Below the pieces are notes generated by a model. It was not told the DNA's origin and ran no database searches. It saw only the letters and a list, made by a program, of their open reading frames with translations. Source: Dimorphilus gyrociliatus (lineage: Eukaryota; Animalia; Annelida). From it: a stretch of 64,000 nt of DNA. The stretch is from positions 3,032,165 through 3,096,164 of the forward strand of contig CAJFCJ010000005.1 of assembly GCA_904063045.1 (NCBI GenBank), in the 5' to 3' direction. Shown one piece after another: positions 15,097 through 63,476 of the stretch (the first letter of the stretch is position 1; each line of letters begins with the position of its first letter). The translations under genes were made by a program, and so were the position numbers.

Positions 15097-18000
15097 CTAA
15101 TAGAATGTGTTTAGGTCGTCCGTACTCTTGGCCGACTTGATGAATTTCTTAGTTTTCGGAAGTGATTGCGAAGCTTTATCTACATCGACCAAACTGGCTG
15201 AAACGAACATATTCAGAGTCATTCTTAAACGTTCGTATTGTCGCTTCAAGTCGGCAATCTCCTCTTCTTTCTATAAAATGTAACAAACGCTTTAATTATA
15301 TACAGTTTACGACTATAGGGAAATGGGGGTGGGAAAAAGAGGGTTGTAGGAATACACTTGGGAAAAGAGTTAGTTGTCTGATTACAATGATAGAGACTCT
15401 ATGTAAGACGAATAAGCGAAAATAATTTTTCTCCTCCATTTATCCTTGATTTTTCCAATTCTTCTTCGTATCAGTCTTTCTTTTCTTAATCCATCTCCGT
15501 ATCTTATCCTTGTTCACTTTTCTCCATTATCATCATCTTCTCTTCATTCTTGCTCTGTGCATCTGTAATTCTCGTTAAAAAACTTCTTTTGGCTTTATAT
15601 AAAACAGATATTCCTTTTTCTTCTTCCTTTGTTCTTTTGCTTTCTGGTGTTCTTGTGTCTGGGTTTGTATATATATATACTTGTGTACGTGTGTGTATGT
15701 GCGTAGGTTTTTACATTAAGTAATTCCTAATTAAAGCGTTTCTTTCGACACCTTTATCTCTCTTCCTTTCTCTCTTCTTGGCGAGCGACAAGAGGATTAT
15801 GCGATTTACGACGCGAAATAAATAACCGATTGGGCTTTCCTTTTAATCAAGCCAATTCCCCCACAGTTGCTCCGGAAGAGGAACATTCTATTTTAGCAGG
15901 GAGGCTGGGAGACTGACGGAAAATTCCGTGTACCCTGAAGGTTTATTACAAGATTAATCAATTGGGTGGAAGGGAAGGTTATTTTTTTTTATTTTTCTTT
16001 CAGGGAAGTGCGCATTGATCATTTTTATTCTCTGCATCTATAATGACAACATATATAAAAGAAACGCTTACCTTTGACAGTATGTTCTTTACGATTAAGT
16101 GAATATTTTGGTCATATTTTGGTTGTAAGGAATAATCGATTGTATCTATAGGATTTTCAATTCCTGCCTAAACAATGTAATGAGTAAAGTTGAGTGGAAA
16201 ATCTTTATTAAATGTATAGAAAAATAAAAATAGATAACCTCCTTATATATTCGTTCCATGGTATAGAGAAATGTGTTAGAACCATAAACAGACTCGGAGC
16301 TGGTATGATGACTAATGGACTTTGCTAATTTATTTCTTGGCGTTTCCTTATGCTGCCTCAAGTAAATTATCTAACGAAAAGTACACATAAAAGAGAATTG
16401 AATCAATTAAAACGATATGAGATACTGAGAATTTAATCAATAGATTGCATTTTCTTTTCTTAATATAAGAAAAAATTACTTTGAAAGATATAAAGTACCT
16501 TTGGTATGAAAAGAAGGAACAAGGTTATAGACGTAGCTAACAAAACACAGCCGCTATAAAAACCGTAGGCAACATCGATCTCATCTTGCATAACTGTTAC
16601 AACAGTTACACCAACCAGGGACATAATAAGGACGTTGTAAACGCAAAATCCAATATATCTATATCATTTCCGTTTCGTTTTTGTTGGTTCATTAAGGTAG
16701 TTGGCAAGTAAGAGAAATAAGTTCATTGCATTACTTCAAGTTTATATATAAATATAATACATATATAGCATACAGTATATATATATATATATATATATAT
16801 ATAATGTAATATATAAACTGTATGGATTTATATGAAATTTCTATTTTGTTTTTACTTGGAATCATTTAAAGCTGGCAAGTGAATATGTCTTGTTGAATAA
16901 GCCAAAAAACAACCAAAAACTAATAAACATAATTTCCAACTTCCCAGAGCAATAAGCCAGTAAATTTGGTTGTTACTTTTACAGTGTAAATGCCTATAAT
17001 GCAGTATATGCAGCAAAGTTTCCTACAAGAAAAAACAAACATTAGTTAGATAAGAAGTTATCTTCACTCTTATTTCTTATCCTCTATACTTTTGGATTTC
17101 TAAAAGTTATTTCCACTAATCTAAATGGATTTATAATGGTCCAAATCACTAGTATGATAACGTCTATCATCCAAAATAGTAGAACAGAAGTTATAAGGTG
17201 AAAATCTTTAAGAGGTTGCTAAGGATGTATGCAGTAAAAAAATAGCCATGTGTTATAAAGGAAGCATTTTTTATAATTATAAATAATGTATAATACAAAA
17301 ACCTTTTGTCTCGGTATCATCTTTGTAAAGATGGCGTGAACACGCCAAGTTTTAGCAAACATAGGGGCGAATGCAAATGTAAAACCCGTAAATATAGCCC
17401 AGACCCTTATCTGCATTATGGTGGCAATTATTTATATATTTTTAGTAAAATATTCGTATACTTACTAAGCAGATTCTAGTAGCAAGCGTATGGGTTAGAT
17501 AACGGCCGTCTAGACCAAATAGTATAGCGCTGGCGTAGCACAAGATACATCCAAAAGTAATTAAATTGTTTAATCTAGGCGAAGACATTTTTATGTGCCT
17601 GTTTGTATATATTTTTATTGTTTGTTAATGTTATGTGATAAGATAAAGACAGTAAGGAAAATATATAAAAGAATGATAATACAGACGCATGATTCCTGAA
17701 AGCGATATTGAAGAAAAGAAAGCCCAATGCCATTGCTATTCCCACAACACTTAGTGTGAATACAACAATAATAATCTTTTTGTTCAAATATACAAACACC
17801 TTGACGGGTTTTGGTTCATCAGTTACTCTAACATTGTCTGAAAGAGAAATTTAAACTCGGCTATAATTAGCTTCATTTGTAGATGTATAAAAAATATATA
17901 TAGTGTATATATATATATATATATATATATAGCTATTGTTAATTATATTGGCCACACACACACAGACACACATCTGAACATGTATATTTATTATTTATTA

Positions 18001-45795: not shown

Positions 45796-46458
45796 TTAAC
45801 TTCTTTTAGGTTGTTTTGAAATCTCGGCAACATCAATGCTTGCGAAATTGATACAGGCAGCGTACATTTGCACCAAACTTATTCCAGATTTAACTAATGC
45901 TATAGGAGCGCACAGAATACATATTGCCGAATATATGCCAAAACTCAGTGGACCAAGAGGAACTACAGGTCCCGGTGTAAAATAAACAAGATAAAGCATA
46001 CAATAGAATAACTCATTTCCGGCACACATGCAGAACAAAACTTTACGATTCGTGTAGTATAATTTTAGGATTTTGTTCTTAGATAGGTCCATCTTCTTGT
46101 GGTTTTCGATACCTTTCATCAGACATGATTGTAGGTGCATCCAATGACTAGCAATATCGATTACAACTGACAACTGGAAAATAAACATCCAACTTGGATA
46201 GAAATGTGACAGTGTAATCAAAAGACACATTGTTGCACAACGATCCGTCAGTTGGTCGAGAATTGCTCCGAACTTTGAGCTTTGATTTAACATTCTGGCA
46301 GCATGTCCATCTATGGCATCCAGGAATGAAGATAGTAAGTAACAGAATGTAGCTATAACATGATTTGTTGGCATGAAGTAGAAAGAGATCAGAGCGAGTA
46401 TTATCCTTGCGTAGCCGATTAGATTCGGCACGAAAAGGAAGACGTCCTTTTCTTCCAT
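45796..46458 (-). CDS. CDIPT: CDP-diacylglycerol--inositol 3-phosphatidyltransferase (phosphatidylinositol synthase), single exon
   Basis: 220 aa; VFLFVPNLIGYARI and the CDP-alcohol phosphotransferase motif DAIDGHAARMLNQSSKFGAILDQLTDR. Confidence 0.97.
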   Translation of the reverse strand: MEEKDVFLFVPNLIGYARIILALISFYFMPTNHVIATFCYLLSSFLDAIDGHAARMLNQSSKFGAILDQLTDRCATMCLLITLSHFYPSWMFIFQLSVVIDIASHWMHLQSCLMKGIENHKKMDLSKNKILKLYYTNRKVLFCMCAGNELFYCMLYLVYFTPGPVVPLGPLSFGIYSAICILCAPIALVKSGISLVQMYAACINFASIDVAEISKQPKRS

Positions 46459-46790: not shown

Positions 46791-48669
46791 TTATTTTTCT
46801 CTTGTGCTTCTTTTCTTTTCGCAATCCTTCCAGTACTCCTCACTTTGCATCTCAATTAATCTAGAAACAACTCTTTCAACTGCAAATTGTTCTTCAAGAC
46901 CAGAGAAAAGAGCTAATTCTTCATTTGGGTCACCCTAATTATAAAAAATATACAAATATAAGAATTAATAAAATCATTAATAAATTACTTTTTTAATATC
47001 CAAATCTCCTATGACAATCCTTTTAAAGTGCTCTTCTTCGTCAGTTAGTTCTTTACCAATTGAGAATAAATAATTGATTGTTGCATCAGCCGAACAAACA
47101 AGTTGCATCTGATTAACAAGTAATTAGAATTACAGATAGATTATTGATAACAATGAACGTACCCTTTCGTCATATATTGTATCGATAAGACTAATAAATC
47201 TTTTAGCAGCAGTTTTATTTCTTTTCGTTAATATTGGAATATTTCTTAATAAAAGTGTATTGAATTCTTTAGATATCTCTAAATAGTCTTCAGCGCCAAG
47301 TGGTCTATCGCACAACTCCTTAAAATCGCAGTCAATTACTTTTCCCTTCGTTTTTACGAACTTAACTTGTCTTTCCCTAACTGTTATGACTCTTTCTCCT
47401 TCAACTGGAAATAAATTACGGATTATAGGACTAATTCATAATGTAAAGTAAATGTTTTTACCTCCGGACTCCTTCTTTGTTAAATCTTCAAATATCCTAT
47501 CCATTTCTTTTACAGAGTCACATTTATGTGTACTATATATTTCATTATAGATTTTATTATTATGACTTATTTGAATAACTTATTTCTTGAAACAATACTA
47601 ACACAAAGAATATTTGACTTGTAGATGGCACTTTCAAAACCCTATGATCAATTTTTGAGTCTAAATCCCTAACTATACAATTTTCCTGCAGAAGAGATAG
47701 ATGATAATAATATAAAAATCTATAATTAACTTTATAGTTTACCTGTAATAAAGGAATAAATGGTACAAAGTTACTTCTTTGTAAACCTTTTTCATATAAT
47801 TCTTCAGGTGGGCGATTTGATGTAGCGATAACAACAACTCCATATTCCCATAAGAACGTAAAGAGTCTTTTTAAAATCATAGCATCGGCTATGTTAGTTA
47901 CTTGAAATTCATCGAAGCACAATAGCCAAGACTCCTCAGCAATTTTACGGGCAACTGGAGGAATAGGATCAAAACTTTCATGTATTCTAACTGTCTTATC
48001 CCTGGGAATAGTTTCTTTAAAGGCGTGTATCTCTACCAAAGTAGAAAAAATGTTTAATTCAAATTATTAACTTTATCATTTCTATTACTTTTGTGGACAT
48101 TAGCCATAAATTCATGAAAATGAAGACGGCTCTTCTTCTCTATTGTAGATGTGTCATAAAATAAATCCATAAGCATTGTTTTGCCACAACCAACGCTACC
48201 GTGAAGATAAAGTCCTTTAGGTTTTTCAACTTTTTTCTTTCTAAATAATTTCTATAGCAGTTGAAACTTGTAAATCATTTAAATATTCTTATAATATTTC
48301 GTATTGGGAAATATATTTACTGGTATCAACCGGACCTGCCGTTCAAAGGAATTAGGAACATAATTTTCTAAACGATCCCTCAATGGTTCGAACTCTTCCT
48401 TTATGATTAATCTCTGAAATTCGTCATTATCTAATTCTCCTGATTTAATTCGTGTTTCGTATAAACTTGATAAGGTTTTGGAGTAGACACATGTGGTATC
48501 TGCAATAAATAATGAAATTGTTCAAGTCTAAAGCACACAAAAACAATGCAACTTAAAGAAATTATTGATGTTAATTACGCGATAAACATCTAGAAATGAT
48601 CTTCGGTTCATAATAATATAAGGTTGAAAATATCAAAGATGACCTTTTCATGAGAGGTGAAAACGCCAT
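46791..48669 (-). CDS. AFG1L: AFG1-like mitochondrial ATPase (LACE1); multi-exon
   Basis: Presequence-like N-terminus [12 protein letters not shown]; [22 protein letters not shown] (Walker A), [22 protein letters not shown] (Walker B), [50 protein letters not shown]. Confidence 0.95.
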
Positions 48670-49180: not shown

Positions 49181-51824
49181 CTATTGACTCGGTCCAACTG
49201 AAGTATGCTTACTTTCATTTGTGGTACAACGTAACGTTTCATTTTTTACATAGAATAACGCATACACTTTAGGCAAAAATAGACAAAGTAAGGTGATAAA
49301 TCCGTTCGCAAGTAAACATACTCCTAAAATGACTACTTTATAGTAAATGTAGAACATGGTAAAGTATGTTGGTAACAATACAATCCATAGGAAAATCGTT
49401 GTCGCAACAGAAACAAATATATACCATGACTCGTTAAAATTTTCTGGTAGTTTTCTAGCTAGATAAGCCAATGTTACACATATTAACAATAGCAATACGT
49501 TAAACCCCAGAGGGATCGCTAGAGAAATCGGCGGATTGGAACATGTTAGCTCTACTTTCTGTTCAGTTTCTATACGTTGGATTCTTTCAGACGACGGTTG
49601 CCATAAAATGACACTTGTAATTACGAACACCGCCTCAATCAATATGAGAATAGTGGTCAGAACCATAAGCGATTTGTTACTAATCATTTTAGGTTGTTGT
49701 TTACCTTTTCCTCCAGCAGTGAAGATTCTGTACACTCGTTGAGTTTTCATTAAAAGTGGAGCGTAAATAAAGGATGCTCCTAAATGAAATCCTATTCGAT
49801 TCACTAAACAAGTAGCGTATGATGGCTTTGTAATTAGAAACAAAACGGTCATATATCCAATTGTGCTTCCACATAGAATTATTACAGAGAAATGACTGGA
49901 GGATGCTCGAATTATTTTTTCATTTCTATAAACAGCATATATTGCAACAATAGCACTGTTGCCCAATAGTCCGATTATAGACAAAACTAATAGGAGAAGC
50001 CCAAGAGAATCGCCCCATTTAACATATTCATCATCAATTTGAAAACATGCCAAAGCTTCCTCCGAATCTGAAATATCGACATGTTTATATGATCAAATAA
50101 TAGAAACTGTAAATATGAAAGATTGATTTAAACCTGGCCAGAAGAATTGCGGACATTTTTGACAATCTGTTCGATTATTAACTAGAATTTCATTTTCCCT
50201 ACATTCTTTACATTGCCAACAGCATTTAAGTTTTTGCTGGACGATGATTTGTTTCTTTCGGCAAGGAATGCTACAAACAGAAGTAATGTTTAAATCTTTA
50301 AACATGGTAAGAGTATCTGTAAGTTTAGAGTAGGTTCCGACAGTTTCTCGATTCCAGATATTGTCTTCCCAAGTGAAGCGATTAATTTCGAATAAACCAT
50401 TCATATCACCTTTATCGTCGAATGTGTATTTTACGCCACTCAAACTAGTTATTTGAGTTTTTCTTAAGTAATAAAGTACCTTATCTCCAGTAATGCAATC
50501 ATTCTAAGAGTAAATTGAAAGTTGTACTTATGCCTATTAATTAAAATATTATCCTTATCGACTTAACACTTATATTAATAATTTATGAATGTAATGACTT
50601 TTAATATGTAATTTAAGAAATAAGGAGAATTATATATGTATAAGAAACAACTTTCAATATTGATCTATTCTGAAATGCTTTCGGACATTCTGTAGATATT
50701 AAATTATGTAATGCTTTAGCATAAACATCAATTCCATCGGCTACTTTCCTAAAATTACCCGTAAATAGTGGATTTATATTTGACATGTTGTTATACTTTC
50801 TACAAGTTGTATTAAAGTCACAATTTCCCAATTGTTCCCATAATCTTTTTGTCCAATATAATGTCGGATCATTAGGTGTTAATGATTCAAAGTACTTTTC
50901 AAACTCAATATCTTTACCGTCTGGATAAGTAAATGTTAGAGTTCCATGTTGGATGTGTTCGTAGCCATTCTCTCGACTAAAAGCATCACTTGCTATAAAT
51001 ATGAATTGTTCATTTGGTGCCAATTTATTTAGAGTAGAGTATAGTCGAAATCTCATTCGAAGTACAATAAAGATAACGATAACTCTTGCCTTTTTATGAT
51101 GAATTATATTTCGAACAATTTCATCATAATTATCTGTATAATCTTGACTAAATCTTTTTGAATATCCAATACAAATTCCATTCTTTTTGGTATATTTTTC
51201 CATGTATTTTGCGGCATTTTCACCGAATGAACCTTCAGTATATAACAATTGAATATACGTCCATCCAAAGTGTTTTAAAAGCTTTACCATGCCTTCTGTT
51301 ACAAAGGTGTCAGGTGGAACTAGACGAGAGAAATATTCAAATCGTGCTTTATTTGATAGCTCTACATATGTCGAATAAATTCCGAGAGTTGGTAAATGAA
51401 TTGCGGATGTTACACTAGCTAAGGAAATAGCTTGATCGGATGAATAAGGACCAATAATACCGATAACTTTACTTTTTCTCCTTCCTTCAGTTTCATTAAT
51501 AAATTCCAGAGATCTCCAAGTATAGTCGTTTATTTTTCCACAAGTATCTAAGAAAAGGAAACCAAGCGTAATATTTGGTAGAATATTTGCGTTTTCATTA
51601 TAAATTTTTATTCTATGTCTTATCAATTCTGGAACCAAGTCCAGTTTGGAACCACCGCCTTCATGGCAATTTCTTTTTTCAGTAACATCCGTTTGAAATA
51701 TTATGCCAATTGTTAAATCACCACTTTGATTTAAGGTATTCTTATAACTCAAATCATATTGCTGTAGAGGATAGAAAGATTGTGAAAACTTCAACGTTAG
51801 TAAAAGAATATAAGAAAGTAACAT
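49181..51824 (-). CDS. Metabotropic glutamate receptor-like class C GPCR, paralog A (VFT-CRD-7TM; three exons)
   Basis: Exons 51824-50652, 50503-50134 and 50067-49181. ILPNITLG, GIIGPYSS, RFEYFSRLVPPD, CRD (CCWQCKECRENE...CQKCPQFFWP), 7TM with LARKLPENFNES and LFLPKVY. Confidence 0.92.
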
Positions 51825-53949
51825 ATCCTTCGATTGATAAGGGAAGTTCATGTATAAGAGCTCCCTTTTTTGTGATTTGTCCACTAGCACACCTATATGT
51901 ATACTGCATTTGTAATTATAATAATTCTTCAACATAACATATGTCCATAACAATGTTGCTCACAAAAAGAAGAATGCTTTAGTTCAAATTACAATTTCTT
52001 GACAAAAAGATGAATTATATTATTCTATTCCTCATTAGTCCAATAGATAAAGAGTATCATCGTTAGTTACAATGACATATTTTCCCTTTAAAATTATTCT
52101 ATTGAAGATCAGCATTGAACTTCCTCGGTGTAGCATTTTTCTTCTTCAGCATTCAATAACAAATACGAGACAGCTTTACAATTTGAAAAATCATAGATAT
52201 CGCCTTTGATATTTTACCTATTATAAGCAAATACTTAGTTCTATTTCACAAGTACGATAAAGAATCCCTGTTCTTTACCGCACATTATTAATATTATTAC
52301 TAATTAACCCTTAATTATGGTCATGAATATAAATTGCCTACAAGTGTTACAATTAGATCATATTATTAATAAACAAAAAAATATAATTATTATATTTGTA
52401 TTAGCTAAACTTCAAACAAATTTCTTTAATAAGCAAACTATATGAAAAATTATAACGTTTTAGTTAAATTCGTCAAACAACTATAAATATTATACATTTA
52501 ATAGAATATTTAGTGTTAACTACACGTACAGTGTATGTGTACTTACAGACAAATCTCTAAACTAATATATTTCATTTCTTTTGACAACAAAACACTTCTT
52601 TAATATTTATTATACATTTTCCAAAATTCACAACATAGATGTACATTTCAATAAATGATCTTCAATATTTACTGATCTTTGCTAATAGAACTAAGTTTCT
52701 CGGTTTGCGTGGGATATATAGTGCTTCTTTTCATTAAAATACTAGTACCTGTAATATCATCTTCGTGCACTAAAAATAACGCATATACTTTAGGCAAAAA
52801 TAGACAAAGTAAGGTGATAAATCCGTTCGCAAGTAAACATACTCCTAAAATGACTACTTTATAGTAAATGTAGAACATGGTAAAGTATGTTGGTAACAAT
52901 ACAATCCATAGGAAAATCGTTGTCGCAACAGAAACAAATATGTACCATGACTCGTTAAAATTTTCTGGTAGTTTTCTAGCTAGATAAGCCAATGTTACAC
53001 ATATTAACAATAGCAATACGTTAAACCCCAGAGGGACCGCTAGAGAAATCGGCGGATTGGAACATGTTAGCTCTACTTTCTGTTCAGTTTCTATACGTTG
53101 GATTCTTTCAGACGACGGTTGCCATAAAATGACACTTGTAATTACGAACACCGCCTCAATCAATATGAGAATAGTGGTCAGAACCATAAGCGATTTGTTA
53201 CTAATCATTTTAGGTTGTTGTTTACCTTTTCCTCCAGCAGTGAAGATTCTGTACACTCGTTGAGTTTTCATTAAAAGTGGAGCGTAAATAAAGGATGCTC
53301 CTAAATGAAATCCTATTCGATTCACTAAACAAGTAGCGTATGATGGCTTTGTAATTAGAAACAAAACGGTCATATATCCAATTGTGCTTCCACATAGAAT
53401 TATTACAGAGAAATGACTGGAGGATGCTCGAATTATTTTTTCATTTCTATAAACAGCATATATTGCAACAATAGCACTGTTGCCCAATAGTCCGATTATA
53501 GACAAAACTAATAGGAGAAGCCCAAGAGAATCGCCCCATTTAACATATTCATCATCAATTTGAAAACATGCCAAAGCTTCCTCCGAATCTGAAATATCGA
53601 CATGTTTATATGATCAAATAATAGAAACTGTAAATATGAAAGATTGATTTAAACCTGGCCAGAAGAATTGCGGACATTTTTGACAATCTGTTCGATTATT
53701 AACTAGAATTTCATTTTCTCTACATTCTTTACATTGCCAACAGCATTTAAGTTTTTGCTGTACGATGATTTGTTTCTTTCGGCAAGGAATGCTACAAACA
53801 GAAGTAATGTTTAAATCTTTAAACATGGTAAGAGTATCTGTAAGTTTAGAGTAGGTTCCGACAGTTTCTCGATTCCAGATATTGTCTTCCCAAGTGAAGC
53901 GATTAATTTCGAATAAACCATTCATATCACCTTTATCGTCGAATGTGTA
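49254..53949. repeat. Direct near-identical duplicated block (49254-50428 and 52775-53949; 1175 bp, offset 3521)
   Basis: Manual comparison found five substitutions and no indels across the CRD/7TM coding region and the shared 66-nt intron. Confidence 0.92.
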
Positions 53950-55284
53950 GCGAACACCGCTAAGAGCGGTTATCTGAGACTTTCTGATATGTCGTAATAG
54001 TCTGTTGCCTGTTATACAAGTCTAATTGTTTTAAAGGTTGTAATAAGAATGTTAGGAATACTCTAATGACATTTTAGAAAACAGAGTTTTATAGATTGAT
54101 TTGACAACCTTTAAAACAGATTTATCCTTAAACGCCTCGGGGCATTCAGTAGTTATTAAAGTATTTAATGCTGTAGCATAAACGTCTATACCATCAGCAA
54201 TTTTTAACATAATTCCTTCATAATTCGGTCGTAGAATTGACATATTATGATAGTTTTGACATGTTGTTTCGTATTGGCAATTGCCATATGTTTCCCATGC
54301 AGTTTTTGTCCAGTAGTTAGCCGTATCGGAAGGTTTAAGTGAATCAAAATGTTTTTCAAACTGTTCATCTCTGCCAGCAGAATAAACAAACATCAAACTT
54401 CCATGTTGTAAATGTTCATTACCAAAATTTCGACTGTACGCATCAGCGGCAATAAAAATAAACCTTTCGTTTGGAGAAATTTCATTCATTGTCGTAAAGA
54501 GTTTTGTTCTGATTTTTGAATTGAGAAATAGAACAATTATTTTAGCCTTTTTTGTTTCAATCATTCTTTTTACAACATTTTCGTAATTATCTGTAAAATC
54601 ATGATTGAAACGTTTAGAGTATCCAATACAAATATCGTGTTTTTTAGTATATTTTTGAATATTTTTAGCCGCATTTTCTCCGTAAGATCCCTCCATGTAG
54701 AGCAATTGAATATATGTCCAGTGAAAAGTTTTCATAACTTCCACCATTGCCTCTGTGGCAAAAGCGTCGGATGGAACAAGCCGAGAAAAATATTTGAATC
54801 GAGCTTTATTAGAAAGTTCTACAGATGTTGAATAAATTCCGAGAGTTGGTATTTGAAGAATCGATGTAAGGCCAGCTAGAGAAATAGCTTGATCAGATGA
54901 ATAAGGACCAATAATACCAACAACATTTGATTTAAATTTTCCGTTATCATGCTTCACTAATTCCAAAAATCTCCATGCATAAGTATTTACACCGCCACAC
55001 GTATCAAGATAAATAAAACCCAGTGTTATATTAGGCAATATCTCGTTATTTTCATTAAATCTCTTCAATCGGTAAGTTAACATCTCCGGAATGAACATAC
55101 CTTTTTGATAAAGTCTACCAGTACAGGGAACTTCATCATAGATGTAAGTTTCGTAAAGTATTCCCAAGTTTATATCGCCGTCAATTGATAAATTTGTTTT
55201 TTGAGACGATGGAAAATTCGGCAAATTCAATGACAAACCTGATATCATTCTTATCACAAAAATATTAACAAAAAACGTTTCCAT
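52669..55284 (-). CDS. Metabotropic glutamate receptor-like class C GPCR, paralog B (VFT-CRD-7TM; three exons)
   Basis: Exons 55284-54109, 54021-53655 and 53588-52669. Same motifs as paralog A; begins METFFVNIFVIRMISG. Confidence 0.92.
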
Positions 55285-56152: not shown

Positions 56153-59100
56153 TTAATATTGCGACAATTGACCTTGTTGAGATAGACTTTGATAAAAGGC
56201 CCTATCACCCTGATAAGTTGAATCCTGGGATAGGAGCATATCACCTTGTGATCTATATTCTTCTTGTTGAGAGAAATCTCCTTGGCTCATTCCTCCTCCA
56301 GTCATATTCATTTGCCCAGTTTGGGAGAAAGGTTGACTGAATGGCTGGGATATTGGCTGAGTCATAGGTCCTTGGGAAAATGATGAAGATTGAGAAGATA
56401 CGTTATTAGAAGCCTGTGGGGGATAACGACGTTGCTGCTGTTGCTGAGCTCTTTGCATGTGCATAAAAGGCGGAGGATAGTTGGTGTAGTTCGGTGGCAT
56501 CATCAGTGGAACAGGCATATTAAATGCAGCTGATGCGTATGCTTTGTTCTGTTGAATGTATCCTAATTGATCATGATGAAGATCAGTGTGAGGTGGATGT
56601 TGATGTTGCATATTGTAACCCTTTTGCTTGCTAAGCTGCCTGGCGTCGTATGTAGTTGTTTGCATAAAATGAGCTCCTGGATTAAATTGATTTTCAAGTT
56701 TTTTAGGAGGTGCCAGCTGCATGACACTCTCCTTTAAGTTGTTCAGGGGTCCTTCAACTAGAACGTGCTCATCTTTATAAAATGATAGTAAATTATTCCA
56801 TAAACTATGTTTTGATAGCACTTTTGGATTTCCAACAATAACTATTCCATATTTTGCTCTAGTTAAAGCAACATTTAGCCGTCTGGGATCGTTTAAAAAT
56901 CCTATTCCTTGATGCTCATTTGCACGAACACAAGATAATATAATGAAGTCTTTTTCGCGTCCTTGGAAAGCGTCAACACTAGCCACTTCCATTTCCAAAT
57001 AAAGCTTGCTGTTCAGTGAACCAGCATATTGCATATGTTGCACTATATATGCTCTCTGTCCTTCGTACGGTGTAATGACGCCAATCTGATCTGGTCTAAC
57101 TCCCGCCTTTAAAAGACGTGTTGCTACTTTTTCGACATTAGCAGCTTCTGTTCTGTTCAAAAACGAAGTACCGGAAGCTGATATTTCTTCCTGACCAAGA
57201 GTTACCCAAAACATTCTCGGTTTATCGGGTTGTGGCCAGGGCATATCAGCACCCGTTGCAGGTAGAGTTCTATCAGCTGCTGTTACGCCATTTTGAAGAG
57301 TTCCCTCGTAAAAAATATTTGATGGGAAAGCTGAAAGCGATGGATGCATTCTATATTGAACTTGCAGCCGAATTGGGCGTAGTCCTAGAACGACTAAGCG
57401 CTCAAACAGACTCTGAGACAAACCCGCTTTCGCTGCAGGTTTGCACATTACAACAGGTCCTAACTGACAATGATCTCCAACAAGAACCAATTGTCTACAA
57501 CCAAGGACAACAGGTATCATGCACTCAGGTTCTGTCGCTTGAGTGCTTTCGTCAACTAGAACATATTTAAAAGTCATTCGTGCTAATCTTGGATCACCAG
57601 CGCCAACGCATGTGCAGCATATAACATCAGCGGCATGCAAGAGCTCGCGTTCAGTAGATTTTTTAAGAGCTCTATATCGCTTTTCATCAGCTGATGACAG
57701 CTCTCCAGTTTCGTCCTTAAGTTGTTGTAACTTTTTCAAATCTAGGGGCGCGGATGCAGCATTTCGTACCTGATTATGCAAGGCTAAAAAGGATACAGGT
57801 GAATCAAGAGCCTCTCGACTTTTTGCGCATAATCTAACAACTTTTAGTCCAGTTTTATGAATTTTTTCAGTTAGCTGATCAACAGCAATATTCGAGGGAG
57901 CACATACCATAACTTGTCCACTCTGTTTAGCCATATGATAAACAATAGTGGCTGATGTTACAGTTTTTCCTGTACCTGGTGGCCCTTGAATCAACGATAG
58001 TGGTCTCTGCAACACTTGCTTTACAGCAAAAACTTGAGAGTGATTTAACTCAGGTAGACCCGGAGCAGAAAAACGCTTTGGTAGTGTATTTTTCAACAAA
58101 GCCTCTTCTACTTCATGACCGAGTATTCTATGATAAATGTAAGCAGAGACTGAAGTTTCGTCTACAGCTAGTGTTTTCATAGCAGCTTGCATTCGGTCAA
58201 ATGAGGTCGATTTCCATACAACGTCAACAGTATAATCACGAGTAAACTCAATAGGCACTGCTGCGTTTGTTTTCATTTCTATGCCAACTTCATCTCCATA
58301 ATTATCAGGTACTTTAATAACATGGCCAACTCCAGACCACATTTTATGGCCTTCGCCAACATAACGAAGTCGCAACTCGTCGCCTTGCATTATACGAATA
58401 TCATCAGAATTTGTTAAACGAAAGTAGGCAATTCTTCTCTTGTTTAATCCCTGATCCCATCGAACATTAATATTATTTTGAGTTTGTGATTCTTTTACGC
58501 TTCTATCATAATCAGCTTCTTTTTTCACAAGAGGTCCTAGAATATTTTGGTACTGATACGCATCGTCATAACGTAACATAACTGGAGTTGGTTCGTCAGC
58601 CATTCCAGGAGCATCAATATCTTCTAATTTTGCAGATGGTTGTTCTTTCCAAAGTTCTTCTAATCTAGCTATTTGATTCGATGTTATCCTGCGAGCTCTA
58701 TTCTGCTCATTTTCACTTGGAACTTTAACAAGCCAGGCTAGTAATTGATAATCCTGAACGAGTGGTTGCCACTGAGACGAATCCCATGAAACATCTTTCA
58801 GTGTGGCATTAGTTGCACAAGGTGCTCTGCAAAGTAGAACAACAACACTGTCGGCTTTTGCCGGAATAAATCCCAGTAAAAATATGTTTTTGCAACCACA
58901 ATTGTAACATTCCATTACAGTTTCTCCAAGAGGTCCTTCGGAGTGTAGCATTACTTCTTTGGTTTTCGCTCTAACCAAATGCTGTATGATATGACTTCCA
59001 GATGAGCATCCGCGTCCGTTACAGAACCATTTCTTTGAGGATATACATTTAACAACGCAAGCAGGGTCATGGATTCCACAATAGGCACAGGCATGTTCAG

Positions 59101-59462
59101 GGAGATCCCTGTTATACGTTCCCTCTTCATCATCTCCTTCTTCAAAAGTCAACTCAGCTACTCCCGATGCTAATGTCGCTAAACCATCATTAACACCATT
59201 GGTCTATTGAATAATACCATTATATTAAATTTTAAAATATATTTAAAATACAATCGGTTATCAATAAAAAAATTCACCCTACCAAATTGTTTTGGGATTG
59301 TATGACATCGTCAAACGGTTGAGTCTGGGTTTGAGTTTGAGTTATACCCGTAAAGTCCTCAAATTGAGATTGTTGCGTGTTTTCAAGCAAGTAATCATTG
59401 CCAGATTCATCTGGGTCATGGAACACGAGGCTTTGCGTATTGGATTGAAAGGTGTCGGTCAT
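56153..59462 (-). CDS. UPF1: Regulator of nonsense transcripts 1 (UPF1 RNA helicase); two exons
   Basis: Exon 1 59462-59283 and exon 2 59203-56153 (79-nt intron). CH domain ([20 protein letters not shown]), SF1 motifs ([28 protein letters not shown]), SQ-rich C-terminus ending LSQY. Confidence 0.98.
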
Positions 59463-60545: not shown

Positions 60546-63476
60546 ATGGCGACAATCTTGAAGGTTTTTGAACTAGGCCGGCAATCAAAATGCATAAGGT
60601 ATGTCACTTTTCACTTTGTACATATCGCGAGTGGAAAATGAAAATGCTAAAGATTTAAATAAGCTTCTACTGCATAAATTACATATTTGGAGAAGAAAAT
60701 ATAATCGTGAGCGATAATATATAACTATGTTATCTATGAATAGAACTGAATTTATTTAAATCACTTCTAATAGTAACGTCTTCGACAGATTGCAATCCTT
60801 AGGAAATATTCATATGAGATACTGTAGTAAAAGTAAGATTAAATAATACATTGATTTGGTTTTAGCAATGTAGTATTTGTTATATTATGTTCAGGTTATC
60901 AGAATATCTCTACGCTGTTAATTGCAAATAGAGGAGAGATAGCATGCCGGGTAATGAGAACTGCAAAAAAAATGGGTATAAAAACTGTGGCCCTGTTTAG
61001 TGAACCCGATCGAAACTCAATGCATGTGGCAATGGTAAATATTCAAAATACCCATATTTACTATTATCGTACACAGTGTAGTTTTTAGGCAGATGAAGCT
61101 TATCACATTGGGCCAGCAGCCTCGCAAGAAAGCTATTTAAGACAAGATAAAATAATCAATATAGCCAAAAAAACAGGAGCTCAAGTGAGATTTGAAAAGT
61201 CTTTTTTAATATTTTGGTGTTAAATAATTTTGGATTTTCTCTTTCATTAGGCAATTCATCCAGGTTATGGATTTTTGTCGGAAAATTATGAATTTGCTGA
61301 TTTATGTAAATCAGAAGGTATCACTTTTATTGGACCTCCATCTTCCGCCATTAAAGATATGGGAATCAAGAGGTTTGAAATGTCTTTTACTGAAATACAT
61401 AATCTTCTTATTAATTAAGAATGTTTTGATTTATAGTACATCGAAACATATTATGTCGGCTGCTGGTGTACCAATTATAGAAGGTTATCATGGCGAAGAT
61501 CAAAGTGACCAAAGGCTTAGAGAAGAAGCAGAAAGAATAGGCTTTCCTATAATGATAAAAGCGGTTAGAGGTGGAGGTGGAAAGGTAATAGAAATTTGTA
61601 CTTTGTTTTATATATAATATCTTAGTAATGTTATTTTACAAAAGGGTATGAGAATTTCTAATACTGCTGAAGAATTTCAAGAACAATTAGACTCTGCTAG
61701 AAGCGAAGCTATGAAATCTTTTGGTGATGACGTTATGCTAGTAGAAAAGTTTGTTAATACACCAAGACACGTCGAAGTACAAATATTCGGTGATCATCAT
61801 GGAAATTATGTTTACCTATTCGAAAGAGATTGTAGTGTACAGCGTCGGCATCAGAAGGTGATTGAAGAAGCACCTGCTCCAGGTTTAACGTCCGAAACTC
61901 GACAGGCTATTGGCGAAGCCGCTATCCGAGCTGCTAGAGCAGTTAACTATGTTGGTGCTGGCACTGTTGAATTTATTATGGATGAAGAACAAAATTTTTA
62001 TTTTATGGAAATGAACACAAGACTTCAAGTTGAACATCCTGTTAGCGAAATGATTACAGATACCGACTTGGTAGAGTGGCAAATTAAAGTGGCTAGTGGT
62101 CAAGTGCTACCGAAAAAACAGTCTGATCTAAAGATAAATGGACATTCCTTTGAGGCTAGAATCTATGCAGAAGATCCGGATAACAATTTTATGCCTGGAG
62201 CAGGTCCTCTTCACTTTTTGGAAACACCCAAACCCGATGAGTTTACACGTGTGGAAACAGGTGTTAGACAAAATGACGAAGTGTCTGTACATTACGATCC
62301 AATGATTGCCAAACTTGTTGTATGGTCTCATGATAGAAAAAGTGCCTTGAGTAAATTAATATATTCCCTAAGACAATATAAGGTAATTGTTAAAAATTAT
62401 ATCTGCAATCTAATTTATAAATATTTCTTTATCTATATACATTTAACACACTTTATTTCAGATTGTTGGATTAGCAAACAACATTTCCTTCCTGGATAAT
62501 TTAGCTAGTCATCCAGAATTCCAAAATGCAAACGTCCATACAGGTGTTTAAAACGTTTATTATAATACACTGTAATAAATTAATATGTTGAATTTTTCCT
62601 TCTCTTGTCAGGATTTATTCCTCAATATTACGACAATCTATTTGTGAAAAAATCAGTCGATCCTAGCGTTATTTGCCAATCAGCTTTAGCATTGTTATTG
62701 AAAAGAATGAATGATGTTAAAAAAAGAGGTATTTTTTAAATGGTCAATAAAGATGCGTGATGAATAAACTATTTATTATTTTAGATGCTTTTACACCGTT
62801 TTCGGATTCTACTTTGAGAAGGGTAAATCACGATTTACGCAGAAAAGTTCTATTGAAGAAAGATGGTGCAGGTAGATTACTATTATTATAACTTTTTTAA
62901 AAGAGTAAAATATCTCTACTTTATTGTAGATTATGAAATATGTATTGTTCCAAGTGCTAAATCAAATGTGTATCAAGTGGAATACGAAAATTCGTCATTT
63001 GAAGTTGAAGTACTACCAGTTATTTCAAATGAAAATCGTTTGGATTTAAATTTTAACATTGATGGAGTGAAGTCAAAGGCAACAGCTGTCTTTTCACAAA
63101 ATACTATTAACTTATTTTCTCAAAATGGGTCCTTTGTATTTGATGTACCATTACCAAACTATACCAAGGGCTCATCTGCTGCTGGAGCTAGTTCCGATTC
63201 TGCTATAGCTCCAATGCCTGGAGTTGTTGACAAAGTACACGTTACCGAGGGTCAAGAAGTAAAAGAAGGTAAAGTATATTTCAACAATCTTTGTACCCGT
63301 TTTGCTATTGCAATTTAAACTTTGTTGTCAAAATAGGAGATAGGCTGTTGGTCATGATAGCTATGAAAATGGAATATGTTATTAAGAGCCCTAAAGATGG
63401 AGTGATTAAAAAAATATTCCATAAAAGCGGAGATACAACCAGTAAAGGAACCGTTCTTGTAACTTTTGAAAATTGA
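60546..63476 (+). CDS. MCCC1: Methylcrotonoyl-CoA carboxylase alpha (biotin-containing) subunit; multi-exon
   Basis: [88 protein letters not shown], and the biotinylation motif IAMKMEY near the C-terminus. Confidence 0.93.

Follow-up and report, generated by a model that had tools for sequence, protein, structure and literature searches.

Probable interlocus gene conversion of a cysteine-rich/7TM tract between two old tandem class C GPCR genes of the annelid Dimorphilus gyrociliatus

Two adjacent receptor genes of Dimorphilus gyrociliatus, here called A and B, share a nearly identical tract of 1175 bp, which is very probably the product of interlocus (non-allelic) gene conversion between old tandem paralogues, a process that would be recurrent and limited to an island formed by the cysteine-rich domain (CRD) and the seven-transmembrane (7TM) region. 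Both genes lie in a window of 64,000 nucleotides (the whole stretch that was analysed, contig CAJFCJ010000005.1, positions 3,032,165 to 3,096,164), and all coordinates below are those of the window. Conversion is supported by the homogenisation of an intron and of synonymous sites, by saturated synonymous divergence (dS) in the flanks, by a significant fragment test and by an apparent disagreement between the trees of flank and tract. The case is a clean but ordinary regional gene conversion, its kind being well known and its mechanism not new.

Gene models and family assignment

Genes A and B are neighbours in a head-to-tail tandem, both on the minus strand and both intact according to their open reading frames (ORFs) and domain searches. 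The full class C GPCR domain set (ANF_receptor, NCD3G and 7tm_3 of Pfam) was found in each, with NCD3G matches above the curated Pfam cut-off and a PF00003 match that spans profile positions 2-251 of 251, i.e., 7tm_3 at full length. The features of the two genes are the following (a slash marks the exon end at a donor site).

Gene B, all on the minus strand:
54109..55284 (-), exon 1: signal peptide and Venus-flytrap (VFT; ANF_receptor) domain, 392 codons, ATG at 55284; ORF, PF01094 5e-42, donor AAG/GTTGTC, nearest solved structure mGlu3 (1.9e-42)
54022..54108 (-), intron 1: 87 nt, GT..AG, placed by splice landmarks
53655..54021 (-), exon 2: end of the VFT domain and cysteine-rich domain (NCD3G), PF07562 1.8e-12
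53950-54021 (-), part of exon 2 outside the identical tract: its first 72 nt, 53-54% identical to A
53589..53654 (-), intron 2: 66 nt, same sequence as intron 2 of A
52669..53588 (-), exon 3: 7TM and 35-residue tail, stop codon included; PF00003 1.7e-57, mGlu3 2.2e-42
52775..53949 (-), homogenised tract, gene B copy: 5/1175 mismatches against 49254-50428, dS 0.01-0.04

Gene A, all on the minus strand:
50652..51824 (-), exon 1: Venus-flytrap domain; ORF, PF01094 3e-43, donor AAA/GTTGTT
50504..50651 (-), intron 1: 148 nt, placed by splice landmarks
50134..50503 (-), exon 2: end of the VFT domain and NCD3G, PF07562 2.4e-12
50429-50503 (-), part of exon 2 outside the tract: its first 75 nt, with an identity of 72% to the C130 copy but 53% to B
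50068..50133 (-), intron 2: 66 nt
49181..50067 (-), exon 3: 7TM and 24-residue tail, stop codon included; PF00003 1.6e-57, tail homologous to that of C130
49254..50428 (-), homogenised tract, gene A copy: the same comparison over 1175 positions as for the gene B copy

The start of gene A was tentatively set at the codon at 51824 (MLLSYILLL...); an in-frame ATG lies upstream of it (MNFPYQSKD...), and extra 5′ exons beyond the modelled exon 1 are possible. Protein searches were carried out with one exon per query, so that the annotated full-length A and B (about 810 aa) lay beyond the range of lengths that the word search covered. The nearest solved structures were mGlu3 and mGlu2 (7TM ~1e-42), and in the alignment of exon 1 with mGlu3, examined with regard to the amino-acid-binding Ser/Thr signature of the VFT domain, the motifs YSSD and YSTS face the GSYSS and ASTS stretches of that receptor. 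Judged by their VFT, NCD3G and 7tm_3 domains, the predicted products of A and B are class C (glutamate-family) GPCRs. They belong to a lineage-specific mGluR-like subfamily of this annelid.

The near-identical tract

When 49254-50428 and 52775-53949 are compared without gaps, they differ at five sites (50240, 50198, 49516, 49421 and 49265 in gene A coordinates), of which four are synonymous and one exchanges Ile for Val, and intron 2 is without any difference; the first-pass annotation, which had reported five differences counted by eye with a single nonsynonymous one and an identical 66-nt intron, was thus accurate. Within the tract lie the final ~49 codons of the ligand-binding domain, the CRD, intron 2 and the complete set of seven membrane helices. 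Its 5′ edge lies 24-25 codons into exon 2, at YTFDDK, and its 3′ edge directly past PKVYALF, the end of TM7; that these edges are sharp, as had been claimed from the letters, is borne out by an identity that falls at once to 42-54%. Both edges sit in motifs that are conserved at the nucleotide level (LSGV.Y.F..GD and PKVYA), and the replacement is in register at both ends, without indel, duplication or filler. The copies are spaced 3.5 kb apart, and the 78-Mb assembly holds the block in just two copies, the next best match being 73% identical.

The longest identical run between A and B measures 681 nt, whereas none of 2000 shuffles gave a run longer than 56 nt. In an in-house permutation version of the Sawyer/GENECONV logic (not GENECONV itself), 243 consecutive polymorphic sites had A = B, while 10000 permutations produced no more than 25 such sites in a row (p <= 1e-4). 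The binomial log10 P for the tract is about -228, and its origin by chance is excluded. The five differences sit towards the edges of the tract, around the clean core of 681 nt; an erosion of the edges, considered from this clustering, was set aside as not significant (largest-gap p about 0.08, a hand calculation).

Divergence outside the tract

Outside the tract, A and B agree at 53-54% of the nucleotides over the initial 72 nt of exon 2, at about 63% over exon 1 and at 42-49% in the tails. The first introns (148 nt in A, 87 nt in B) give no meaningful alignment, and the ligand-binding exons have 54% amino-acid identity with a saturated dS of 1.54 and a dN of 0.37, so that the divergence of VFT exons and first introns noted earlier stands. 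The course of dS along the genes, which the first-pass annotation had set as a test of its reading, is not uniform but changes from ~1.5 in the ligand-binding exon to 0.01-0.04 in the tract. That annotation had also spoken of diversifying sensor domains; for the exon that encodes them dN/dS is about 0.24, a value of purifying and not of diversifying selection. The C-terminal tails, which it had called unrelated, are indeed poorly alike between A and B, yet each has a homologue in another paralogue, the tail of A in the C130 copy and that of B in C1b. The 5′ parts of exon 2 are homologous but only 53-54% identical, and A and B are therefore both old, complete genes. The alternative wording of the earlier claim, gene conversion or domain-swap duplication, can consequently be narrowed to recent conversion, a domain swap being unneeded for two genes that each have an anciently diverged but homologous 5′ part of exon 2 and a tail of their own.

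The ligand-binding exons of A, B, C1b and C130 all stand at roughly the same distance from one another, B being 62% identical to C1b and only 54-56% to A. The 7TM tree has A and B as sisters and rejects a clade of B with C1b (p-AU 1.6e-4). In the VFT tree B is closest to C1b, yet under the AU test an A+B clade stays acceptable (p 0.168), and it is accordingly the 7TM side, together with dS, that carries the discordance of the A/B trees.

The same pattern in other clusters

The first-pass annotation had proposed a search for domain-restricted homogenisation in other receptor clusters, and it was found on contig C9 and, in a weaker version, at C1:3.26 Mb. On C9, three genes of the same subfamily (a, b and c) share identical patches that switch partners: a run of 637 nt in the 7TM part between a and b, a run of 213 nt in exon 2 between b and c, and other patches between a and c. 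The ligand-binding exons of this trio have 1:1 orthologues in another species (P0041, P0037) and the C9a+C9b clade is rejected (p 6.5e-10), a cross-species comparison made with VFT ORFs, no C9-type 7TM ORFs having been recovered from that species. The trio resembles A/B in its exon structure, in a 3′ limit near the end of TM7 and in having identical 7TM/CRD patches under anciently diverged ligand-binding exons; it differs in that three genes carry several short patches with changing partners, whereas the two genes A and B have one continuous tract that includes the CRD and the intron. A pair of genes at C1:3.26 Mb has 96.4% identity in the last 797 nt and 82% upstream.

Gene conversion and its alternatives

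By this account, a break in one copy would have been repaired with the neighbouring copy as template, and a complete pre-existing gene would have been overwritten in register. The edges of the tract may then be the borders of an island in which similarity still suffices for homologous repair; the ligand-binding exon and the tails have presumably long been too diverged to join in. Conversion in the subfamily is probably recurrent rather than a single accident. Earlier rounds are shown on C9, and at the A/B locus they are an added assumption, made because a C1b-like block in B (~69% identical) before the event would have been a very inefficient substrate for homologous repair. The GC content at third positions showed no conversion-specific rise (0.28-0.32 in 7TM exons vs 0.20-0.30 in ligand-binding exons), and it was discarded as a sign of biased gene conversion since paralogues without a conversion partner show the same difference. 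A cassette origin, in which two alternative ligand-binding exons with one 7TM part were followed by duplication of the constant part, was likewise rejected, as A and B each own an old, diverged start of exon 2 (24-25 codons) and tail.

Class C receptors act as dimers. It is conceivable, if rather unlikely, that the shared CRD/7TM part is a selected common "chassis" that would allow A and B to pair freely and to form combinatorial sensors that all feed one coupling output. The sharp edges are accounted for just as well by a neutral conversion island whose limits are set by homology. If such selection were at work, the subfamily would form a continuum from independent tandem genes (C1a/C1b) over converted modules (A/B on C5, the C9 trio) to a shared module. 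The shared-module end of that continuum would be the locus at C1:~85-95 kb, with one physical module for three alternative ligand-binding first exons. We know of no description of such a protocadherin/UGT1A-like route for GPCRs.

The tract could also have entered gene B by a one-off, non-homologous paste of the CRD/7TM part, through a microhomology-mediated template switch or a partial segmental duplication. The flanks beside the tract are only 42-54% identical, C1b as a proxy for the original block of B would at 63-69% identity to the tract have been a poor substrate for homologous repair, and the short conserved motifs at both edges could have supplied microhomology. Such an event is nevertheless improbable, both ends being in perfect register with no junction scar, and the many small partner-switching patches on C9 being typical of repeated homologous conversion; its outcome would in any case formally be a conversion.

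Still less probable is an artefact of assembly or polishing, by which a single true CRD/7TM part would have been placed in both diverged genes, or the mis-mapping of reads would have homogenised two moderately similar copies. The copies differ by five substitutions, have unique flanks on both sides and stand only 3.5 kb apart within a PacBio-based assembly with an N50 of 2.24 Mb (PMC7854359), which holds no third copy of the block. Polishing would be unable to lift ~70% identity to 99.6%, and the same pattern recurs with different edges on C9 and more weakly in the second C1 array.

Lastly, the whole gene could have been duplicated recently, the ligand-binding domain and tail then diverging very fast while purifying selection alone held the 7TM part. 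This would agree with the generally better conservation of 7TM than of Venus-flytrap domains and with the A+B clade that the ligand-binding exon does not reject, but is refuted by the contrast in dS and the identical intron 2. The first introns and tails are moreover unalignable, and in its ligand-binding exon B is less close to A than to C1b, which lies on another contig.

Direction of the transfer

Under gene conversion, gene A was tentatively the donor and gene B the recipient. The block shared by A and B has 73-77% identity with C130 but 63-69% with C1b, and the exon-2 flank and tail of A are C130-like while the tail of B is C1b-like, which suggests that the block belonged to A; the flanks compared are short (70-75 nt) and C130 is a pseudogene. 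Exon-sized ORFs of a related species were gathered from Logan assemblies by word-based protein searches, which for A/B gave one VFT ORF (P0034) and one 7TM ORF (P0003), unlinked to a single gene. P0003 and the A/B block form a group that leaves out C1b, and this too points to A as the donor. The five differences that are left resemble point mutations acquired by both copies since the last event, the derived state being in A at 50240 and 49265 and in B at 49516 and 49421, with 50198 ambiguous.

Significance and comparison with known systems

A/B is a textbook-clean case, with two copies and one 1.2-kb tract that encloses an intron and whose edges are resolved within a few bases. For annelid class C GPCRs, phylogenies and orthology calls that are based on the 7TM part will mislead, paralogues resembling recent species-specific duplicates: A groups there with B, and the three C9 genes with each other, even though these genes have ligand-binding exons older than the split from another species. 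Hidden within the "conserved GPCR repertoire" of D. gyrociliatus there is thus an mGluR-like subfamily in which the sensor half and the signalling half each have a history of their own. In a literature search, neither gene conversion in D. gyrociliatus nor a domain-restricted form of it in class C GPCRs was the subject of any paper found.

Among characterised receptors, the group II receptors mGlu2 and mGlu3 share the three-domain architecture of A and B and give the best structure matches for both the VFT exon and the 7TM exon. The kinship is distant, being drawn from Pfam and PDB E-values (~1e-42), and A and B are putative receptors from a lineage-specific expansion. In the OlfC genes of fish, V2R-like class C GPCRs that likewise combine VFT, CRD and 7TM parts and have expanded in tandem, gene conversion was detected with GENECONV (PMC6588630). 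That paper gives the events as a caveat on phylogeny, without a domain-restricted tract, an identical intron or sharp edges (PMC6588630), and concerns vertebrate chemoreceptors, whereas A and B are mGluR-like annelid genes.

The mammalian TLR1/TLR6 pair, in which regional gene conversion took place in independent events in nine species (Kruithof et al. 2007, PMC2077338), belongs to another receptor superfamily, and A/B is documented in one species and partially in a second. The rationale of a shared partner (TLR2) has no demonstrated counterpart for A/B. As with A and B, however, TLR1 and TLR6 are tandem receptors in which conversion is confined to the C-terminal membrane and signalling part while the N-terminal ligand-binding part diverges. 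In the mammalian pair the conversion is repeated, and in its C-terminal part the paralogues are more alike than the orthologues.

Two tandem receptor genes and their neighbours

Genes A and B are class C GPCR genes that lie on the minus strand as direct repeats, 3521 bp apart. Their exon frames connect without stops, every splice site is GT..AG, and the models are as follows.

Gene A exon 1: 51824-50652, minus strand, ligand-binding (Venus-flytrap) domain, start codon tentative
Gene A intron 1: 148 nt, minus strand, GT..AG
Gene A exon 2: 50503-50134, minus strand
Gene A intron 2: 66 nt, minus strand, GT..AG
Gene A exon 3: 50067-49181, minus strand
Gene B exon 1: 55284-54109, minus strand, ligand-binding domain
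Gene B intron 1: 87 nt, minus strand, GT..AG
Gene B exon 2: 54021-53655, minus strand
Gene B intron 2: 66 nt, minus strand, GT..AG
Gene B exon 3: 53588-52669, minus strand

When the products were searched exon by exon, both contained ANF_receptor (3e-43 in A, 5e-42 in B), the cysteine-rich domain NCD3G (about 2e-12) and a full-length 7tm_3 domain (about 1.6e-57), and the closest solved structures to both halves were mGlu3 and mGlu2. The surroundings hold the following genes.

45796-46458, minus strand: CDP-alcohol phosphatidyltransferase
47560-48039, minus strand: AFG1-like ATPase
56153-59152, minus strand: 999-codon single ORF, a complete UPF1 nonsense-mediated-decay helicase (UPF1_Zn_bind, 1B, AAA_11, AAA_12), immediately upstream of gene B, GC about 41%, clearly higher than its surroundings
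61648-63318, plus strand: biotin carboxylase / acyl-CoA carboxylase

Since the CDP-alcohol phosphatidyltransferase, the AFG1-like ATPase and the biotin carboxylase are housekeeping genes, A and B form an isolated two-gene array outside any larger receptor cluster. At 16964-17621, minus strand, 7tm_3 matches only weakly (31 and 25 bits), in a separate, distant class C gene.

A near-identical tract between diverged flanks

In an ungapped comparison, 49254-50428 (gene A) and 52775-53949 (gene B) differ at 5 of 1175 positions. Identity per 50-nt window rises from a background of 20-46% to 92-100% from 49250 and returns to background past 50428, and gapped alignment of the gene regions recovered the same block, with the upstream ligand-binding exons alignable and strongly diverged (72% over the best 300 nt, repeat family D2). 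Read on the minus strand, the gene A tract runs from 50428 down to 49254. It starts at YTFDDK, after 25 codons of exon 2 in A and 24 in B, and ends directly past PKVYALF at the end of TM7; it therefore takes in the final ~49 codons of the ligand-binding domain together with the cysteine-rich domain (CRD), intron 2, which is identical in A and B, and all seven helices. The first-pass annotation had described these blocks, introns and edges correctly in every checkable detail, the single Ile/Val change included. Nowhere else in the 77.9-Mb assembly does the block recur: the best hit apart from these two copies, on contig C130, is 73% identical.

Divergence between genes A and B (amino-acid identity; nucleotide identity; dN; dS)
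Exon 1 (ligand-binding): 54%; 63%; 0.37; 1.54 (saturated)
Exon 2, first 24 codons: 58%; 54%; 0.38; saturated
Tract, exon-2 part: 100%; 99.3%; 0; 0.038
Tract, exon-3 part: 99.6%; 99.6%; 0.0016; 0.011
Tails: 25%; 42%; 0.90; saturated

Sliding-window analysis, which the annotation had proposed, gave low dS in the tract, with exon-1 windows mostly above 1.4 or saturated. A and B agree without interruption for up to 681 nt, whereas 2000 shuffles of the differences never produced more than 56 nt; permuting a three-sequence alignment in the manner of GENECONV gave p <= 1e-4, and the near-identity has a binomial log10 P of about -228 given the rate outside. Recent gene conversion, as first suggested, is thus supported by the identity of silent and intronic sites within the tract, the saturated dS of exon 1 and the permutation result. 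Protein-level selection as the cause of the identity was ruled out, because silent and intronic sites share it.

Within the ligand-binding exon, the most conserved 40 codons (GIIGPYSSDQAISLA...PTLGIYSTSVELSNKARF; 51345-51464 in gene A, and the gene B counterpart) have a dS of 0.59, which may be the remnant of an ancient conversion patch that has since decayed, or may reflect constraint at the nucleotide level; among the other nine exon-1 windows, dS is above 1.4 or saturated in seven and 0.93 in the first.

Old paralogues and their subfamily

A scan of the genome for 7tm_3 gave 53 matches. The A/B subfamily, whose members have a three-exon structure in common, also includes C1a, C1b and the C1c locus on contig C1, three genes at C9:1.956-1.980 Mb, and the C130 copy. 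Across the ligand-binding exon B matches C1b at 62% identity and A at only 54-56%; together with C130, these three make up a clade that has good support as a whole but no resolved order inside. Among exon-sized ORFs of one related species from Logan assemblies, the ligand-binding exons of C9a, C9b, C1a and two C1c exons have 1:1 orthologues, and a single member, P0034, falls in the A/B/C1b/C130 clade.

The 7TM tree joins A and B as sisters on very short branches, and forcing B with C1b was rejected (p-AU 1.6e-4). An A+B clade was not rejected in the ligand-binding exon (p 0.168), so the case for A/B conversion comes mainly from dS and the intron and less from topology.

The C130 copy (C130:13144-15434, genome stretch L047:4145-6434, on a 32-kb contig) is broken: its 7TM region has a frame break and contains stop codons, and its ligand-binding exon is partial. 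No other sequence comes nearer to the A/B block (73-77% nt), and its tail is A-like. The C1c locus (C1:~85000-95200, stretches L049:4071-9000 and L046:179-7176; listed elsewhere as C1: about 75-95 kb) has three consecutive ANF_receptor exons, with a single exon 2 and then a single 7TM exon after them; tblastn found no CRD/7TM between the three, two of which have 1:1 orthologues in the related Logan species (P0042, P0036).

The same pattern in other clusters

Other receptor clusters, to which the first reading had also pointed, were then compared by sliding identity, and similarity in other tandem pairs was likewise limited to the 3' module. C9a and C9b share a 637-nt run in the 7TM exon with zero differences, C9b and C9c an identical run of 213 nt in exon 2, and C9a and C9c further patches, with about 205 nt identical in all three; as in A/B, identity stops near the PKVYA motif. 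The ligand-binding exons of C9a and C9b nevertheless each have their own orthologue in the related species, and a C9a+C9b clade was rejected (p 6.5e-10). Such partner-switching patches beneath anciently separate flanks are the hallmark of repeated interlocus conversion.

A second C1 array (C1:3258832-3261478 and 3270254-3273117, stretches L051-L053) of class C genes, with an exon structure unlike that of the A/B subfamily, contains two genes that are 82% identical over 2.1 kb and 96.4% over the last 797 nt, the second half of the 7TM, which may be another conversion tract. The two halves of the 7TM region in these genes are separated by short tandem repeats of an approximately 107-nt unit (C1:3272109-3272586 and 3260683-3260947), recognised as staggered self-hits in blastn.

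Mechanism, direction and selection

The replaced segment is continuous over 1175 bp, in register and without indels, and would have arisen when a break in one copy was repaired with the other as template. Both edges sit on nucleotide-conserved motifs (LSGV.Y.F..GD and PKVYA), and the sequence adjoining them on the outside is 42-54% identical, so that strand invasion and annealing must have occurred within the tract, which implies an island already similar before the last event. This pre-existing similarity and the C9 mosaic favour, by a small margin, recurrent conversion that has kept the CRD/7TM island homogeneous over a single late event; conversion would long ago have ceased to reach the tails and the ligand-binding exon. 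Of the five differences, two are derived in A (50240, 49265), two in B (49516, 49421) and one is ambiguous (50198); being split between the genes, they appear to be ordinary mutations postdating the last event.

Direction can be proposed tentatively. The block is nearer to C130 (73-77%) than to C1b (63-69%), the exon-2 flank and C-terminal tail of gene A are C130-like, the last seven codons included, the tail of gene B is C1b-like, and P0003, a 7TM ORF of the related Logan species, clusters with the A/B block and leaves C1b outside (support 95/97, alternative p 0.017). Together these suggest, by a modest preference, that the block is native to A and that B was overwritten.

The first-pass annotation had proposed that conversion keeps one signalling module under diversifying sensor domains. 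The conversion is supported and the adaptive part is unproven. A neutral, similarity-limited island explains the sharp borders. The data do not point to diversifying selection: with a dN/dS of about 0.24 in its exon, the ligand-binding domain has diverged yet is under purifying selection. GC3 gave no signal of biased gene conversion. A selected shared chassis for dimerisation and coupling, in a continuum with the C1 locus of three ligand-binding exons, seems quite improbable.

Relation to known systems

For Dimorphilus gyrociliatus, a miniature annelid with a published ~78-Mb PacBio assembly (N50 2.24 Mb, median intron 66 bp), the genome paper makes no mention of gene conversion (PMC7854359), and our literature search found no such conversion reported for annelids or mGluR-like genes. 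The A/B tract serves mainly as a clean example of the process, and it calls for caution when orthology in this family is read from the 7TM. Conversion between tandem receptor genes, the reading supported here, is itself known: it was detected in the class C OlfC genes of fish (PMC6588630), and in TLR1/TLR6 of nine mammals domain-restricted conversion has kept the membrane/signalling part alike while the ligand-binding part diverged (PMC2077338), an arrangement of tandem receptor paralogues that A and B resemble in both respects.
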